This document shows, piece after piece, positions 11,403 to 17,026 of a DNA stretch of 64,000 nt. The position numbers and the translations under genes are program-made. The stretch is taken from the sequence record PV764602.1, one strand, 5' to 3'. Under the pieces are notes generated by a model, which was not told where the DNA came from, made no database searches, and saw nothing but the letters and a program-made list of their open reading frames with translations. How positions within the stretch are numbered: the first letter of the stretch is position 1; every line of letters begins with the position of its first letter.

Positions 11403-11948
11403 ATGGCTGAGTTTGACATTGCCTATAGGCAGCAGAACATCGAGTCGGATTTGATTGATGATCCTACTGACCCTGGGGCTGTGACAAACTATGGTTGGAA
11501 CCTTGGCTCCCTCCGCTTGGTGGGAGTCGAGGCCGACTACGAATTCGTCAAGAGTATGACGGCGGCAACTGCCAAGGAATTGTATCGTCAGTATTTCTGG
11601 CATCCACTTTGGACCGAACTCAAATGTCAGCAGGCGGCAAACAAGCTGTTTACCCTCGCTGTGACAACGTGTGCACCCAACAACTTCAACTTGGCTACTC
11701 GCTGTTTGCAGAGGGCCTTGTGGGCATCGGGCGCTTACGTGCATGAGGATGGAAAGCTTACAGAGGATGTAATAAGCGCGGCTAACGCCGTTGAGTGTTC
11801 GGCCCTAAGCTCTGCCATGCGTAGTGAAATGGCCTCCTACTACAGGACGCTTAACGCGGAGTATGAACTGAGGGTCAAGTACAAGCTGCCCGTGGTAGTC
11901 CCCGTGAATCGTTACATTCGCGTGTGGCTTCACAACTCCTATCGTTGA
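11403..11948 (+). CDS. glycoside hydrolase 108-like lysozyme (divergent)
   Basis: ESDLIDDPTDPGAVTNYG resembles GH108 EGGYxxxPxDPGGETxYG; LQRAL...DG peptidoglycan-binding segment. Confidence 0.75.
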   Translation: MAEFDIAYRQQNIESDLIDDPTDPGAVTNYGWNLGSLRLVGVEADYEFVKSMTAATAKELYRQYFWHPLWTELKCQQAANKLFTLAVTTCAPNNFNLATRCLQRALWASGAYVHEDGKLTEDVISAANAVECSALSSAMRSEMASYYRTLNAEYELRVKYKLPVVVPVNRYIRVWLHNSYR

Positions 11949-11958
11949 AGAGGATGGC

Positions 11959-12684
11959 ATGACCATGAGCACGGAAACCGTTCTGATCGGTCTTGGCTGT
12001 CTACCTGATAACGCTCAAGCCCTTGAGGGGGCGTGCATTCGGTACGGCATCGAGACTACGTGGCACAAGTCCATTTTCATCGGACAGATCGCTGTAGAAA
12101 CAGGTGGCTTCCGTGCCACCCGCGAAAGCATGAATTACAGCGTTGAAGGTCTTATCAATGGTTTTGGCCGTCACCGTATCAGTGTGGCGGACGCTCAGAA
12201 ATACGGGCGTATTGATAAGGTCGTGAACGGCAAGAAAACTGTTATCCGAGCAGCTAACCAAGTAGCCATCGCCAACATCCTGTACGGCGGTGAGTGGGGA
12301 CGCAAGAATTTGGGTAATACCGAGTTGAACGACGGATGGAATTTCAGGGGCGGCGGTGACAAGCAATTGACTGGCCGCGCTAATTGGACCAACTACAGCA
12401 TGGACACCTATGGTGACTTGCGTGTGCTGGAGAATCCTACTCTGATCGAACTCTATCCCGACAAGAGCTACACTGCTGGTTGGTTCTGGCAACGCAACAA
12501 GCTGGGTGACATTGCTTCGCAATATGTGCTCCCTGATGATCCCAAATCTCCGGAGTACGATTCCATCCTGCGTTCTACTGTTACGGTAGTTACCAAGAAG
12601 GTCAACGGCGGTGACAAGGGTTTGGAGGATCGCATCATGTGGACGAAAAAGGCCCTGCAAGGCTTCAATCAACTCGTACTGTGA
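11959..12684 (+). CDS. endolysin, glycoside hydrolase family 19
   Basis: FIGQIAVETGGF, DGWNFRGGGDKQLTGRANW, VTKKVNGG..GLEDR motifs. Confidence 0.9.
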   Translation: MTMSTETVLIGLGCLPDNAQALEGACIRYGIETTWHKSIFIGQIAVETGGFRATRESMNYSVEGLINGFGRHRISVADAQKYGRIDKVVNGKKTVIRAANQVAIANILYGGEWGRKNLGNTELNDGWNFRGGGDKQLTGRANWTNYSMDTYGDLRVLENPTLIELYPDKSYTAGWFWQRNKLGDIASQYVLPDDPKSPEYDSILRSTVTVVTKKVNGGDKGLEDRIMWTKKALQGFNQLVL

Positions 12685-12736: not shown

Positions 12737-13102
12737 ATGAGAATTTTAGCCAATAGCACCAAGGTACGCGAAGGGGATTTCTCCAAGCTTCGTATCCCAA
12801 AAGCAAAGCAAGTCAAGGTGCACACGCATGACGCATGGCAGGGCCGAAAGAATCATCACCTGTCCTACGATTTTACTGCACCTAGCACTAGCATGCACCA
12901 TCAAGCAGTCGGGAAGGCCATCCATGAGCATCTTGCGTCTCATGGCCTGTCTCCACACAAACGCTCCAGTTCGGGCAACACGGTTACCATTGAGTACAGG
13001 CACCCATCGGGTCACCGCGCCGTTGTCAAGATGAAGCGTACAAAGCTCGCAGGCGATCCCAACCATCACGTGGAATTCGCCGTAGAGAAGACCGGTAACT
13101 AA
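12737..13102 (+). CDS. His-rich basic protein, homologous to modules of the 23416 protein
   Basis: AIHEHLASHGLSPH...EYRHPSGHRAVV resembles HIHTKLHEAGFQPH...YRDASGHEARV. Confidence 0.7.
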   Translation: MRILANSTKVREGDFSKLRIPKAKQVKVHTHDAWQGRKNHHLSYDFTAPSTSMHHQAVGKAIHEHLASHGLSPHKRSSSGNTVTIEYRHPSGHRAVVKMKRTKLAGDPNHHVEFAVEKTGN

Positions 13103-13122
13103 CACTTCAATGAGGTAACGTC

Positions 13123-13464
13123 ATGCCCTTGTGGTTGACTGCATGGTTTGCGAAAATGTGGGCCAAGTGCTCGCAGTATGTCATTGCCGCTGGCTCCATA
13201 TTGGCGGCAATTGCTGGTATCTTCCTGTACGGTCGCTTCAAGGGTAAGTCCGCCGCCGATGCAAAGCATGCGGAGCAGGATGCGAAACGAATTGAGGCTG
13301 AAACCAAGATCGTTGAGAAGATCGACCAAGCTCACGAATCTACCCGTGAGCAGGTCGAGGAAAAAATCGAGAAAATCCCTGCTCCAACTACGGATCCTAA
13401 CGAGACAGTTAGGGTGGGGGATGCACCTAAAGATTCGGCCGCAGGCAAATTGAGGGGCTGGTAA
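13123..13464 (+). CDS. inner-membrane spanin (Rz-like)
   Basis: N-terminal TM (YVIAAGSILAAIAGIFLYG) followed by a coiled coil; coupled to a lipoprotein gene. Confidence 0.8.
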   Translation: MPLWLTAWFAKMWAKCSQYVIAAGSILAAIAGIFLYGRFKGKSAADAKHAEQDAKRIEAETKIVEKIDQAHESTREQVEEKIEKIPAPTTDPNETVRVGDAPKDSAAGKLRGW

Positions 13465-13691
13465 TGAAAACTCTCCTGATTATCGCCATCGCCTTACTTG
13501 CAGGCTGCGCAACTACTCCACAAGTGGTGGCTCAAACCGACATTTGCGCTGGCTGGAAGGCCATCAAGGTCAACGAAAACGACGAATTCACGGATGGAAC
13601 TGCCAAGCAGATTCTAGCGCACAATTGTCAAGGCGCAGCCTTGAAGTGCTGGGCCTATCCGAGGAATGATCCCCAAATTTGTGAACGCTAA
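13464..13691 (+). CDS. outer-membrane spanin lipoprotein (Rz1-like)
   Basis: Lipobox LLAGC; additional Cys residues; TAATG overlap with the i-spanin. Confidence 0.8.
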   Translation: MKTLLIIAIALLAGCATTPQVVAQTDICAGWKAIKVNENDEFTDGTAKQILAHNCQGAALKCWAYPRNDPQICER

Positions 13692-13700
13692 GAGGTAACA

Positions 13701-16085
13701 ATGCCGCTGCCCACTTCCATCCAACCCATCATTGAGAATACTCCGGACATTCTCAAAGCATGTGTTGAAGTCTATCAGTCCATGTCTCTGCTACAGGACC
13801 GGGGCTTCATGTTCTTGAACGAGCAGATTGAATTGCTCACGTCTACGGGTCAGGTGGCACACGTCACCACTGCGTATGGTACTCAGGTTGAGTTGCCCAC
13901 GTATCATACTCTGGCAGCCACCTCGAACGCCTCTACGGAATTGGTGCAGCAGTTTCAGCGCCAAATCTACGACGTGTTCACTAGCAACAACCCGACGGTA
14001 ATCATTAGTGACGGTCTTGGTAACGACACTCAGGTGATCGGCTATCAGACCATGAACGACAAGGTTAACGCTACGTCGGACGTGGCTTCTATCGCCAACA
14101 CCAACGCGCTCAACGCGCTGGGTAAGGCCACCGAAGCGCTGAACCGTGTTACCAACTCCGAGCTCAACGCCAACGTGGCTTTGGCGAACGGCACACCACC
14201 CACCTATCAGACGCGTTCGGTTCTCGATACTGTTACGACGATGCAACGCAATAGTATCGCCTACGTGATCGCTGATCCGGTTCCCACCAACAACACCATC
14301 TACCAGTACAACGGTACTGCATGGACTCCTCAGTATGATCGGCTGCTGACCGCCCTAGGTAGTCCGCGTGGCTATCTGGCCCCACTCACGGGCGCTATCT
14401 ACCGTACCTATCAGAGCAAGCTAGAATCACTGGTTACTCCTGAAGACGTGGGGGCCAAGGGTGACGGCACTACTGATGACGGTCCCGCCTTCATCGCCGC
14501 CGCTGCGAACGGGCGCCTGATTGTGCTGTCCCCCAACAAGACCTACCGTATCACCTCCAACGCCACTGTAGGCAGCATCATGCCTAATGGCTCCAAGATT
14601 TCCATCGGTCCGGGCGCTACCCTGACTTTTGATGGCCTGATCGTGGACGATGCTACGGTTGTGTTTACGGGTGAGGGCAACGCCGTCAGCAGCACTAGCG
14701 TCTACAGCGTTGGCTGGTTCGCAGGTGATAGCTTTAACGCCAAGTGGCTCGCCATGAAGCGTGGTTTCACCCAGCAGGTAGTCAAGTACGTCACGCTGCC
14801 GATGCCGCACCGCACCGATCCTGCGGCAACTACCGCAGCTTCGGACGGTCAGGCACGTTGGAAGCTTACGGACTCTGTGGTCTTCAACAATACGGAATCT
14901 AACCTGATCGTCAATGCGCTGGGCGAATTCCTTGTGGACCAGTCCGCCTCGCTGTCGGCAGGTGCTTTCATCCTTGGCGAGCTGACTGCCCCCTCCAGCA
15001 TCAACTTCCCGAACGGCTTGCGCGTCCTGTGTAACGGTAGTGCAACTTATGGTCTGCGCGTTCGCGGCGGTAGCAGCATCAGTTTTGAAGAACTACTGGT
15101 TCTGGACAGTGCAACCAACTCCGGCATCCTGTGGGACAACTATAACGGCCCGAGTCATCGCATTAGCTTCGACCGCGTGCGTATCGACGGCTTTGGTGTG
15201 GCAGGCGTAACTATCCAGCCGCAGGGTGGCCCGAGCTATCCGAACCAATCGCCTCCGATCACTTCGTGTTCGATCAATTCGCTGCAAACGCGAGGCGGTC
15301 GTAGCGGCTGCACGAACTTCGTCAAGATCGCGGGTAACGTGGATGGCCTGACCATCACCAACGTCCTTGAAGATCGTCCGTCGGGTAGCCTGCTGTTCGA
15401 CTGGAGCGATTCCATGTTCTCGCTGACTAACACTCAGTACGGCACGATTGGTCGCTCCGGTTTGGAGATTGGTCACATTCAGGCGACCAGCACCCAGCTG
15501 CCCATCATCCGTGCGTTCGACAGCACTTCCGCTGCTGACCCTGCGAATGGCAAGATCACGTTCTCGGTAGAGCACATCTATCAGGCGTATCAGCAGAACA
15601 TCGTTCCGGTCATCATGGAATACTCGAAGAACTGCACCATCGGACGTATCAACGCAGGACGCCCCACCTCTAGTCAGGAAGTGCTTGTCCGTATCTTCCG
15701 CGACTGCGAGGGTATTTCTCTGACCGGTACACACTACACCGCTGTTCGTAGTCAGGCCCTGCGTACTCAGTTTGACGGACGCTTCGGCATGGTGGACGTG
15801 GTGCAGCAGAACTCTGCGATCTTCACGGATCTAAACACTGCGGCACTGACGTTCAAGTTTGACCTAATCTGCCTCACCTCCGCGTCTACTTACGCTTCGG
15901 GTTGGGCAGGCGCCAACGCTCTCGATATTCCCACGTCGCTGACCAAGAATATCAACGTTGCCCAGGGTCCGCTGGAAGGAACGACCGGCCCTGAAAGCAC
16001 CCTCAGCATCAGTGCTGCGGAAAACAAGTTCTTTGTGGAAAACCGAACCGGACAGAATCAGCTCGTTGCGGTTCTCATGTCCTAA
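13701..16085 (+). CDS. tailspike / polysaccharide depolymerase (beta-helix)
   Basis: VTPEDVGAKGDGTTDDGPAFIAA pectate-lyase-3-type start, then beta-helix-like repeats. Confidence 0.8.
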   Translation: MPLPTSIQPIIENTPDILKACVEVYQSMSLLQDRGFMFLNEQIELLTSTGQVAHVTTAYGTQVELPTYHTLAATSNASTELVQQFQRQIYDVFTSNNPTVIISDGLGNDTQVIGYQTMNDKVNATSDVASIANTNALNALGKATEALNRVTNSELNANVALANGTPPTYQTRSVLDTVTTMQRNSIAYVIADPVPTNNTIYQYNGTAWTPQYDRLLTALGSPRGYLAPLTGAIYRTYQSKLESLVTPEDVGAKGDGTTDDGPAFIAAAANGRLIVLSPNKTYRITSNATVGSIMPNGSKISIGPGATLTFDGLIVDDATVVFTGEGNAVSSTSVYSVGWFAGDSFNAKWLAMKRGFTQQVVKYVTLPMPHRTDPAATTAASDGQARWKLTDSVVFNNTESNLIVNALGEFLVDQSASLSAGAFILGELTAPSSINFPNGLRVLCNGSATYGLRVRGGSSISFEELLVLDSATNSGILWDNYNGPSHRISFDRVRIDGFGVAGVTIQPQGGPSYPNQSPPITSCSINSLQTRGGRSGCTNFVKIAGNVDGLTITNVLEDRPSGSLLFDWSDSMFSLTNTQYGTIGRSGLEIGHIQATSTQLPIIRAFDSTSAADPANGKITFSVEHIYQAYQQNIVPVIMEYSKNCTIGRINAGRPTSSQEVLVRIFRDCEGISLTGTHYTAVRSQALRTQFDGRFGMVDVVQQNSAIFTDLNTAALTFKFDLICLTSASTYASGWAGANALDIPTSLTKNINVAQGPLEGTTGPESTLSISAAENKFFVENRTGQNQLVAVLMS

Positions 16086-16091
16086 CGTGGT

Positions 16092-16116
16092 GGTCACATG
16101 GACGTGACCCTTTCTT
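16092..16116 (+). promoter_or_regulatory. CsrA/RsmA-like hairpin GGTCAC-ATGGAC-GTGACC
   Basis: ACATGGACGT is a perfect Rsm consensus in a 6-bp stem, just upstream of the lipoprotein RBS. Confidence 0.65.
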
Positions 16117-16126
16117 GAGGTGCACA

Positions 16127-16270
16127 ATGAAGCTATTGGTATTGATCGGAGTGCTAGCTCTGGCAGGCTGCAACTCGATGCCTACGCCGTCCAAGCCGCT
16201 GAACACTGGGGACGAAACGCAACCTCCTCCGGGTTGTGTGGAACTACGTAAGCAAGGAGGCAAGTGCTAA
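16127..16270 (+). CDS. 47-aa lipoprotein (absent from ORF track)
   Basis: Hand translation MKLLVLIGVLALAGCNSMPTPSKPLNTGDETQPPPGCVELRKQGGKC; lipobox LAGC; GAGG RBS. Confidence 0.8.
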   Translation: MKLLVLIGVLALAGCNSMPTPSKPLNTGDETQPPPGCVELRKQGGKC

Positions 16271-16692
16271 TGGCCCTGTCGGTACAAGATTACACGGCAC
16301 TGCGACGCATCCACTCCAAGGCAATGTCTGCCTTCAAGTATGTGTCGGACAAAACCAAATGGGGACTGGTAGAGTATTGGGAACCCGAGGACGTACTGTT
16401 CCCCGTAGGTGCTAGGTTTACGGGAGATTGCGAAGAATTCGCTAGAGTGTGCATGCAGGAAAGCATCAAGGCCGGTTACAAAGCACGGCTCGTTGCATGC
16501 CTTACTGAAGGTGGCGAAGGCCACTGCATCTGTGAGGTGGCGGATGAGGAAGAAACGGGATCGTTCTTCTTAGACAACCGCAAGACCAACATCGTTACCA
16601 AACTGGGATTGACTGGCTACAAGTTCTACAGCGTGTCGCCTTGGAATCCCCAATTTAGCGAGACTCGGCCGTGGAGGCTGGTCAAGGAGTAA
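16270..16692 (+). CDS. bacterial transglutaminase-like cysteine proteinase (BTLCP / LapG-like, peptidase C93)
   Basis: WGLVEYW, GDCEEFA, GEGHC and LDNR give the Cys-His-Asp triad; AAGGAGG RBS before ATG 16270. Confidence 0.85.
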   Translation: MALSVQDYTALRRIHSKAMSAFKYVSDKTKWGLVEYWEPEDVLFPVGARFTGDCEEFARVCMQESIKAGYKARLVACLTEGGEGHCICEVADEEETGSFFLDNRKTNIVTKLGLTGYKFYSVSPWNPQFSETRPWRLVKE

Positions 16693-16695
16693 GGT

Positions 16696-16914
16696 ATGTC
16701 GCTGGTTCCAACCAACACACCACGGCAAAAGATCGCTGCCAAATACAATCCTAGAATCACTAGGATTCGGAAGCAGAAAGCGCAACTGCGCAAGTCCTTG
16801 AAGAACGCCAATACGGCACAGCGCAAGGTCATCGGTAACAAGATTCTGGCCATGAGTAATCAGATCGCTTTGCTTACGGTACAGCGCAACCGCGAGTTGC
16901 AGCGCCTCCGATAA
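16696..16914 (+). CDS. small basic coiled-coil protein
   Basis: 72 aa, K/R-rich; AAGG RBS. Confidence 0.65.
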   Translation: MSLVPTNTPRQKIAAKYNPRITRIRKQKAQLRKSLKNANTAQRKVIGNKILAMSNQIALLTVQRNRELQRLR

Positions 16915-16924
16915 GCCAAAAGAA

Positions 16925-16960
16925 AAGGGCCACCCCTTTCGGAGCGGCCCTTATGTTGTT
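16925..16960 (+). terminator. Rho-independent terminator
   Basis: AAGGGCC...GGCCCTT followed by ATGTTGTT; A-tract upstream suggests it is bidirectional. Confidence 0.65.
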
Positions 16961-17026
16961 GGGTTGGACTGCAAGGATGCTAGTGTCCAGGAGTTAAGGG
17001 GAGCACGATGCTCCCCTTCTTTTTTA
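16951..17026 (+). ncRNA. candidate GGA-rich Csr/Rsm-type small RNA
   Basis: Non-coding gap with four GGA motifs, including GC-AAGGAT-GC, ending in a hairpin plus U-tract. Confidence 0.35.
16996..17025 (+). terminator. Rho-independent terminator (also ends the minus-strand island)
   Basis: AAGGGGAGCA-CGA-TGCTCCCCTT followed by CTTTTTT. Confidence 0.75.

Follow-up and report, generated by a model that had tools for sequence, protein, structure and literature searches.

A Xanthomonas jumbo-phage locus that carries a transglutaminase-like cysteine proteinase as two genes, a small lipoprotein and a signal-less catalytic core

[quoted passage not shown] Two kinds of BTLCP action are known: the release of adhesins by enzymes of the LapG type (PMC3032545, PMC7777525), and the shutdown of capsulation by HvyA, which can also alter phage susceptibility (PMC4241560). 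The genes are found in viruses as well; according to a study of river-water viral genomes, BTLCP is the most frequent auxiliary metabolic gene (AMG) there and is exchanged horizontally between viral clusters (ISME J 2024, PMC11283719). Here we analyzed a BTLCP locus at positions 16127-16692 of a 64,000-nucleotide (nt) stretch of sequence record PV764602.1 (the window; position 1 is its first letter). At this locus the export signal expected for a Peptidase_C93 enzyme is absent from the catalytic open reading frame (ORF) and is carried by a separate lipoprotein gene upstream.

Over positions 13000-17000 the window matches Xanthomonas phage PhiXhv-15 (228.7 kb) with 100% identity, and four sibling records are 99.6-100% identical over the same positions, which together make five deposited phage genomes. 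PhiXhv-15 and its siblings are jumbo myoviruses of wastewater origin (bioRxiv 10.1101/2025.08.08.669339), and in the PhiXhv-15 annotation both ORFs of the cassette are hypothetical proteins. No description of a split of this kind was found in the literature on BTLCP/Peptidase_C93, on transglutaminase-like proteins and jumbo phages, or on these phages.

The 140-amino acid (aa) product of the downstream gene matched Pfam PF06035 with 36.5 bits (gathering cut-off 27) over profile positions 34-144 of 162. Since the match starts at profile position 34, the first ~33 positions are missing from the protein. Its triad, Cys54 (16429-16431), His85 (16522-16524) and Asp102 (16573-16575), has the transglutaminase order, lies in G-D-C-E-E-F-A, G-E-G-H and L-D-N-R motifs that align with canonical BTLCPs, and is invariant in 11 homologues. 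An AlphaFold2 (AF2) model of the 140-aa core had a predicted local distance difference test (pLDDT) score of 84 and a predicted template modelling (pTM) score of 0.80. When this model was used as a Foldseek query, the top six matches were LapG chains (E 5e-6 to 2e-4, template modelling (TM) score 0.64-0.70), the best being 4u65/4fgq; as modelled, the core is a LapG-like fold of the transglutaminase/papain type. No hydrophobic stretch, signal, twin-arginine (Tat) motif or amphipathic segment was detected at its N-terminus, and the ORF starts at the first core helix.

The upstream gene codes for a 47-aa prolipoprotein, whose signal consists of an n-region (MK), a hydrophobic core and the lipobox L-A-G-C. 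The lipobox predicts that Cys15 (16169-16171) is lipid-modified and that the mature peptide has 33 residues. These comprise a Pro-rich tether and a ~20-residue G-C-x9-C element that ends exactly at the stop codon: the prolipoprotein terminates PPPGCVELRKQGGKC directly before it, with the tail pattern PPPGC-x9-C. The invariant positions of the mature lipoprotein (A2) are P10, P20, C23, R27 and C33. Searched alone, the 47-aa protein matched nothing in Pfam at E up to 1, and a word search with it returned only the self-match. A homologous lipoprotein ORF was found upstream of each examined relative of the catalytic gene.

The stop codon of the lipoprotein gene and the start codon of the catalytic gene share one base, and this TAATG overlap points to translational coupling. 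The ribosome-binding site (RBS) of the catalytic gene lies inside lipoprotein codons, and the junctions of relatives carry GGAGG or GGNGG at the equivalent site. The first-pass annotation, made from the sequence alone, had described a 47-aa lipoprotein with an LAGC lipobox, coupled by TAATG to a signal-less BTLCP/LapG-like catalytic domain with a strong RBS of its own, and had noted no slippery heptamer in 16252-16267. When the ORFs and the junction were read, this description proved right in every checked detail; the assignment of the catalytic domain is borne out by the PF06035 match above the cut-off, the triad, the LapG-like fold and the lack of a hydrophobic N-terminus.

Programmed recoding, whether by a -1/+2 frameshift, by hopping or by readthrough at the junction, would yield a fused lipoprotein-BTLCP. 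The one-piece homologues described below show that such a product would be functional, and the strong internal Shine-Dalgarno sequence ahead of the stop recalls the layout of some frameshift sites. However, the catalytic frame is closed by a TAA (16249-16251) 18 nt upstream, so that any frameshift is confined to 16252-16267 (GCAAGGAGGCAAGTGC), and these 16 nt hold no X-XXY-YYZ slippery heptamer; moreover, the cognate Cys codon that follows downstream is not in frame. Of the 57 distinct lipoprotein versions that we collected, 23 have an overlap of 1 nt, and the others have values between -13 and +29 nt; both relative frames (+1 and +2) are present, and the lipoprotein stop codons are TAA (23), TGA (23) and TAG (11). 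No one mechanism fits such variation in frame, overlap and stop codon, which excludes a single conserved recoding mechanism and indicates ordinary coupling of two proteins. A fusion by recoding was rejected on these grounds, and we consider it highly improbable.

The existence of one-piece relatives is also the only point in favor of a sequencing or assembly error, or of a decaying pseudogene of a one-piece gene. Against it, contigs from four independent public runs differ over 15500-17000 by substitutions only, with zero indels, and the junction sequence is identical across the five genome records and these four assemblies. The two-ORF layout described in the first-pass annotation is therefore authentic. 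The layout is conserved across dozens of lineages with intact ORFs, RBS and invariant catalytic residues, so that the locus is not a decaying pseudogene either. Artefact and decay were thus ruled out, and we give them practically no credence.

The missing profile positions correspond to an N-terminal element that we defined from a canonical set of 34 bacterial BTLCPs taken from genomes (188-237 bits on PF06035, positions 2-160). Their N-terminus reads P-x-G-x3-F-C-x6-C after G-x-x-T, and P13, G15, C20 and C27 are invariant in 24 canonical proteins, in agreement with the statement in the first-pass annotation that many BTLCPs begin with P-x-G...C...C. In the phage locus this element (profile ~3-30) lies outside the catalytic ORF, and a diverged G-C-x9-C form of it ends the lipoprotein. 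When a canonical one-piece BTLCP was modelled with AF2, the Cys-loop (residues 11-30) had a pLDDT of 88-92; being ordered in the model, the loop would be a structural part of the one-piece enzyme, and not a floppy linker.

Seven relatives (P0228, P0211, P0219, P0250, P0253, P0247 and L108) carry the lipobox, the tether, the same tail and the catalytic core in one ORF. A hidden Markov model (HMM) of the lipoprotein matched the N-termini of P0228 (E 4.6e-8), P0211 (1.3e-6), P0219 (1.7e-5) and P0250 (5.5e-4), always just N-terminal to the catalytic domain, and decoys, for which the ORFs of the window were used, gave E 0.8 or worse. P0228 is from a phage-like contig and is present on three contigs, and P0211 adjoins bacterial chemotaxis genes. 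We take these one-piece proteins as the decisive evidence that the phage tail is homologous to a BTLCP N-terminus, as judged by sequence comparison.

Profile-profile alignment gave the same picture. When concatenated phage pairs were aligned by hhalign to the 34 canonical BTLCPs, the alignment crossed the junction (score 124.3, vs 117.1 for the core alone), with T-G-D-E-T-Q-P-P-P-G placed on v-G-g-r-T-s-p-P-i-G, the last Cys on the last Cys, and a 9-residue gap at the break. The tail profile alone scored 13.6 against the canonical N-termini (P 0.002); in a control with 150 column shuffles (mean 7.2, standard deviation 1.65) the observed score was reached by 1 of the 150. A second, independent hhalign run placed the tail at columns 4-21 of 196. 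Taken alone, the tail-only comparison would be modest evidence. In three further split loci (L151, L152 and L154) the canonical motif, H-G-x3-F-C-A-R-N-P-x4-C, is found inside the lipoprotein, and these loci bridge the canonical and the phage types of tail.

The proposal of the first-pass annotation that the lipoprotein represents a BTLCP N-terminus that has become detached, together with the alignment of the concatenated pair to the Peptidase C93 family by which it could be checked, was thus upheld: the HMM finds the one-piece relatives, the alignment continues through the junction, and split loci with the canonical motif exist. We are nearly certain that the two genes are a conserved module which arose by fission of a one-piece lipoprotein BTLCP in the short linker behind the second Cys of its Cys-loop, and that they are translated as two polypeptides with no frameshift fusion.

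The split form is widespread. The Xanthomonas jumbo phages LucasX and RTH11 (~305-312 kb) have a catalytic domain 45-46% identical to the PhiXhv-15-type core, preceded by a 53-54-aa lipoprotein gene that ends APPPGCVDLRKRGGAC and overlaps the catalytic ATG by one base. It was also found on the metagenomic contigs L004, L006, L008, L009, L010 and L011-L014, and in a more distant clade of 121-138-aa cores (L049, L088 and L089), whose lipoproteins have longer loops. The pair was kept from 62% down to ~30% catalytic-domain identity, and all close relatives that were examined had it. When 1.8 billion representative proteins were searched with a profile, 649 matches were returned; among the best 150 of these nearly all are 120-150 aa long with the match beginning in the first ~15 residues, that is, signal-less cores. 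Scanning IMG/VR with a short-clade profile gave 72 loci, 62 of them non-redundant, and in 48 of the 62 a lipoprotein ORF in another frame ends at the catalytic start. The pairing of the two genes is far beyond chance. Of the 57 distinct lipoproteins from all collected loci, 53 end in Cys; 55 have exactly three Cys (the lipid-modified one plus two), and in 41 of the 57 the last two Cys are 9 residues apart. Their median mature length is 33 aa, and only 3 have Asp at +2.

Public annotation hides part of this distribution. In P0011, P0013 and P0014 (183-189 aa), and at L008 3919-4567, the catalytic ORF was extended upstream to a GTG start, over the lipoprotein gene but in an incorrect frame, and this small gene was itself left uncalled; a Tat-like N-terminal extension of the three proteins was rejected for the same reason. 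Other viral BTLCPs (L052 and L054-L058, 26-34% identical) are one-piece proteins with a signal peptide or lipobox of their own, and in some of them the Cys-loop is wholly absent. L053 has no signal, and no lipoprotein ORF was seen among its upstream ORFs. In one homologue, P0139 (461 aa), the G-D-C-E-E-F-A motif is interrupted by an insert of ~325 residues whose first residue is Cys and whose last two, immediately ahead of the catalytic Cys, are H-N. Such ends are the signature of an intein at the active-site nucleophile.

A maximum-likelihood tree was built from 96 catalytic domains, omitting redundant loci and loci without a lipobox by the rule used. The PhiXhv-15-type core falls inside a 15-member, all-split clade with a Shimodaira-Hasegawa-like approximate likelihood ratio (SH-aLRT) of 99. 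Split and one-piece forms are interleaved: the best tree has 10 changes once the label of L016 is corrected, and before this relabelling well-supported branches forced at least 2 changes between the two forms. The canonical-motif split clade (L151, L152 and L154) stands apart from the main split clade. By the tree and the positions of the breaks, fission or re-fusion occurred more than once, each time within a few residues after the second Cys. L016 itself carries the split pair (1876-2360, in a Cellvibrionaceae genome) immediately downstream of a 530-aa Gly/His-rich tail-fibre-like gene, and is presumably a prophage.

The features of the locus and its surroundings are collected in the table. 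The cassette belongs to a rightward unit, closed by a strong terminator, that also comprises the endolysin, the spanins and a tailspike-like gene. The endolysin gene is followed by one for a 241-aa protein (region 11403-12684, + strand) that is a glycoside hydrolase in the PhiXhv-15 annotation and has no Pfam match; no holin was identified near this region. The 794-aa gene stands between the o-spanin gene and the cassette, and the same order is seen in the relative L004; its tailspike-like product may be a depolymerase. The hairpin that follows it resembles a weak terminator or a GGA loop of the CsrA type, and its stability is not unusual (fold z = -0.27). The very basic 72-aa ORF was rejected as a third gene of the cassette: it is conserved in the nearest relative (69% identity) but at no other split or one-piece locus.

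Features of the split BTLCP locus and its neighborhood (window coordinates)
Feature	Position	Strand	Basis or remark
GH108 endolysin	11403-11948	+	Pfam GH108 with PG_binding_3
i-spanin	13123-13464	+	PHROG Rz-like spanins, E 5.7e-10 and 7.6e-14 for the pair; PhiXhv-15 annotation
o-spanin	13464-13691	+	PHROG Rz-like spanins, E 5.7e-10 and 7.6e-14 for the pair; PhiXhv-15 annotation
Tailspike-like protein, 794 aa	13701-16085	+	weak tail-spike PHROG matches, E 1.6e-11, residues 218-288
Hairpin between 794-aa gene and cassette	16092-16109	+	6-bp stem, loop AUGGAC, then CUUUCUU; terminator-like in scan
RBS of lipoprotein gene, GAGG	16117-16120	+	6 nt before ATG 16127, from sequence
Prolipoprotein gene, 47 aa	16127-16270	+	signal peptide residues 1-14, lipobox LAGC
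Conserved tail of mature lipoprotein, T-G-D-x-T-x-P-P-x-G-C-x9-C then stop	16205-16267	+	homology to one-piece BTLCPs
RBS of catalytic gene, AAGGAGG	16254-16260	+	9 nt before ATG; inside lipoprotein codons K-Q-G-G
Stop/start overlap TAATG, 1 nt	16268-16272	+	from sequence; last A of TAA (16270) is the A of ATG
Signal-less BTLCP/Peptidase_C93 core, 140 aa	16270-16692	+	PF06035, triad and AF2 fold
Very basic ORF, 72 aa	16696-16914	+	directly after catalytic gene
Strong intrinsic terminator	16996-17018	+	10-bp stem then T-run

Since the core has no export signal and the lipoprotein carries one, the two products would be expected to come together only after a breach of the inner membrane. We therefore considered a holin-gated two-part enzyme, in which core and lipoprotein would assemble upon the breach and act on the envelope, and to which we assign a probability of roughly 0.45. 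The first-pass annotation had likewise surmised that the lipoprotein may anchor or activate the enzyme, perhaps only at lysis. The lipoprotein would be exported by Sec, lipidated and stationed on the periplasmic side, where the lack of Asp at +2 suggests an outer-membrane location and its two tail cysteines would probably be oxidized to a disulfide. Meanwhile the cysteine-rich core would accumulate in the cytoplasm. Holin triggering, or lysis itself, would then open the inner membrane, and the core would flood the periplasm; only at this point would assembly be possible. By docking on the pre-positioned, lipid-anchored tail, the core might gain the N-terminal element that is ordered in one-piece enzymes. 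The outcome would be a membrane-tethered protease or transglutaminase working on an envelope protein at or after lysis, and a surface adhesin, a receptor or a polysaccharide-export component could for example be freed or destroyed.

Several observations are consistent with the holin-gated enzyme. The tight coupling of the genes and their co-inheritance over very deep divergence argue that the two products act together, and, as to timing in the PhiXhv-15-type phage, the cassette shares its + strand unit with the endolysin and the spanins. The tail Cys are kept almost without exception, which fits a periplasmic disulfide, and the catalytic cores of split loci have a mean of 3.4 additional Cys, compared with 0.9 in exported one-piece proteins (Mann-Whitney p 1.6e-11) and 1.6 in the near one-piece relatives (p 2e-5). 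The retention of Cys in the tail and their enrichment in the core hint at adaptation to different compartments.

Other points weigh against it. Neither a conserved neighborhood nor lysis synteny was seen among the upstream genes of 38 other split loci, which include reverse transcriptase, ribonucleotide reductase, MazG, tail sheath and one endolysin; with such heterogeneous neighbors, a dedicated lysis role is unsupported by synteny. The module behaves like a mobile auxiliary gene, in line with what the BTLCP passages of PMC11283719 say of the viral copies. The Cys enrichment is descriptive only, with just 2 well-supported independent contrasts in the tree. When an HMM of the canonical N-termini was run over 1330 ORFs of the window, the lipoprotein ranked only second (5.8 bits, E 0.8), and it is thus the profile-profile results, the one-piece relatives and the intermediates that tie it to the canonical motif. 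The docking of the tail on the core would follow solely from homology with the one-piece proteins, and the confident model of the core without the tail suggests that the tail may be dispensable for folding or activity. Finally, little time would remain for a protease to act after holin triggering.

The products might instead never assemble. After the fission, the core would then have taken up work in the cytoplasm, where it might cleave, deamidate or cross-link a host or phage protein, and the lipoprotein would have retained or acquired a separate envelope role, such as receptor blocking, superinfection exclusion or the titration of a host BTLCP's partner. The core has no export signal and folds alone in the model, its extra cysteines suit a reducing compartment, and the cassette is often found among early or metabolic genes. 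Small phage lipoproteins with functions of their own exist, such as Cor and Llp of T5, and the 47-aa lipoprotein has a weak PHROG match to Cor (E 0.0075). Yet the genes have stayed adjacent and coupled in 57 versions, with identity down to ~30% and after at least two fission or fusion events, which is the pattern of a stoichiometric pair, and what is conserved in the lipoprotein coincides exactly with the element packed on the core in one-piece enzymes. Moreover, the characterized BTLCPs all act outside the cytoplasm (PMC4241560, PMC3032545). We hold separate functions to be unlikely.

It is also conceivable that the core reaches the periplasm of the living cell by a route invisible in the sequence, and there uses the tail of its own lipoprotein or that of a resident prophage. 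The candidate routes are an unknown export pathway, early leakage through a holin or pinholin, and packaging into the virion, from which the core would be ejected into the next host's periplasm. Many proteins are ejected by jumbo phages, and in both the PhiXhv-15-type phage and the L016 prophage a tailspike or tail-fibre gene stands immediately before the cassette. The one-piece phage relatives would be exported early by their own signals, so that an envelope function during infection exists in the family. Against such a route, the core has neither a signal nor a Tat motif nor an amphipathic N-terminus, an ejected core would precede the synthesis of the lipoprotein in the same infection, and the literature on these phages gave no virion proteome data. 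We consider it decidedly unlikely.

A role on the spanin side, which the first-pass annotation had listed among the possible functions, fared less well than its description of the genes: since the phage has its own i-/o-spanin pair (13123-13691) and no lysis-gene neighborhood is conserved elsewhere, such a role is unlikely. The other functions listed there, the dispersal of biofilm and the removal of receptors, are conjectural. The 47-aa lipoprotein was likewise rejected as an Rz1-like o-spanin, because that pair is genuine and the partner here is a peptidase; its best PHROG spanin match (E 4.4e-4) covers residues 1-35, mainly signal and lipobox.

In general terms, phages may repeatedly have divided a lipoprotein protease of the periplasm into two parts, an anchor/activation peptide that is exported and a core that stays in the cytoplasm, with the active, membrane-tethered enzyme forming only at the breach of the membrane; we put this forward as a doubtful generalization. 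If true, the holin-gated split would act at phage exit as a topological timer of an activity that modifies the envelope or a receptor, and no described counterpart of it was found. Should assembly wait for the holin, phages would have in it a new means of timing an enzyme directed at the envelope, an addition to the lysis and exit toolkit, and possibly a natural two-part protease switch. Independently of the mechanism, most viral BTLCP copies surveyed here are split, and the export/anchor piece was divorced from a signal-less core at least twice, which poses a topological puzzle of where and how the halves meet. There is also a correction for the databases: the 183-189-aa homologues have mis-called starts, and the small lipoprotein genes are often uncalled. 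The passages on BTLCP in PMC11283719 make no mention of signal-less viral copies or of pairing with a lipoprotein gene.

Among the known systems, LapG of Pseudomonas fluorescens and Legionella pneumophila (PDB 4FGO-4FGQ, 4U65) is a periplasmic BTLCP that cleaves LapA-type adhesins. The phage core resembles it in the PF06035 domain and in the Cys-His-Asp order, and has LapG as its best structural match (TM 0.69-0.70), although in sequence the two are only 17-19% identical. LapG is made as a single polypeptide that has its own Sec signal, and is under the control of the cyclic di-GMP receptor LapD, whereas in the phage a separate lipoprotein carries the signal and the N-terminal element. In the tree, the LapG-like bacterial proteins (L017-L022) make up a clade of their own (SH-aLRT 100), so that the phage core is outside the LapG subfamily; the tree in fact places the PhiXhv-15-type core with neither the LapG nor the HvyA group. 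HvyA of Caulobacter crescentus and the canonical alphaproteobacterial BTLCPs belong to the same family, and their N-terminal T-x-x-P-x-G-x3-F-C-x6-C aligns with the lipoprotein tail. These proteins are one-piece, soluble and periplasmic, with C-x6-C after x3-F, whereas the phage tail has G-C-x9-C, is lipid-anchored and is encoded by a separate gene. By analogy, an HvyA-like action is a plausible kind of role for the phage copy.

The uncharacterized one-piece lipoprotein BTLCPs (P0228, P0211, P0247, P0250, P0253 and L108) have lipobox, tether, P-P-x-G-C...R-G-x-C tail and core in the same order as the phage pair. They differ in being a single ORF, so that the whole enzyme would be exported and lipid-anchored, and in having fewer extra cysteines. 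With the Rz/Rz1 spanins the cassette shares a small lipoprotein, here putatively of the outer membrane, with conserved Cys, whose gene adjoins or overlaps that of its partner; unlike in spanins, that partner is a soluble cysteine peptidase and not an inner-membrane coiled-coil protein, and there is no sequence relation. Canonical endolysins are signal-less and stay in the cytoplasm until the holin opens the membrane, as in the lysis of lambda, and the signal-less phage enzyme would resemble them in waiting in the cytoplasm for this opening.

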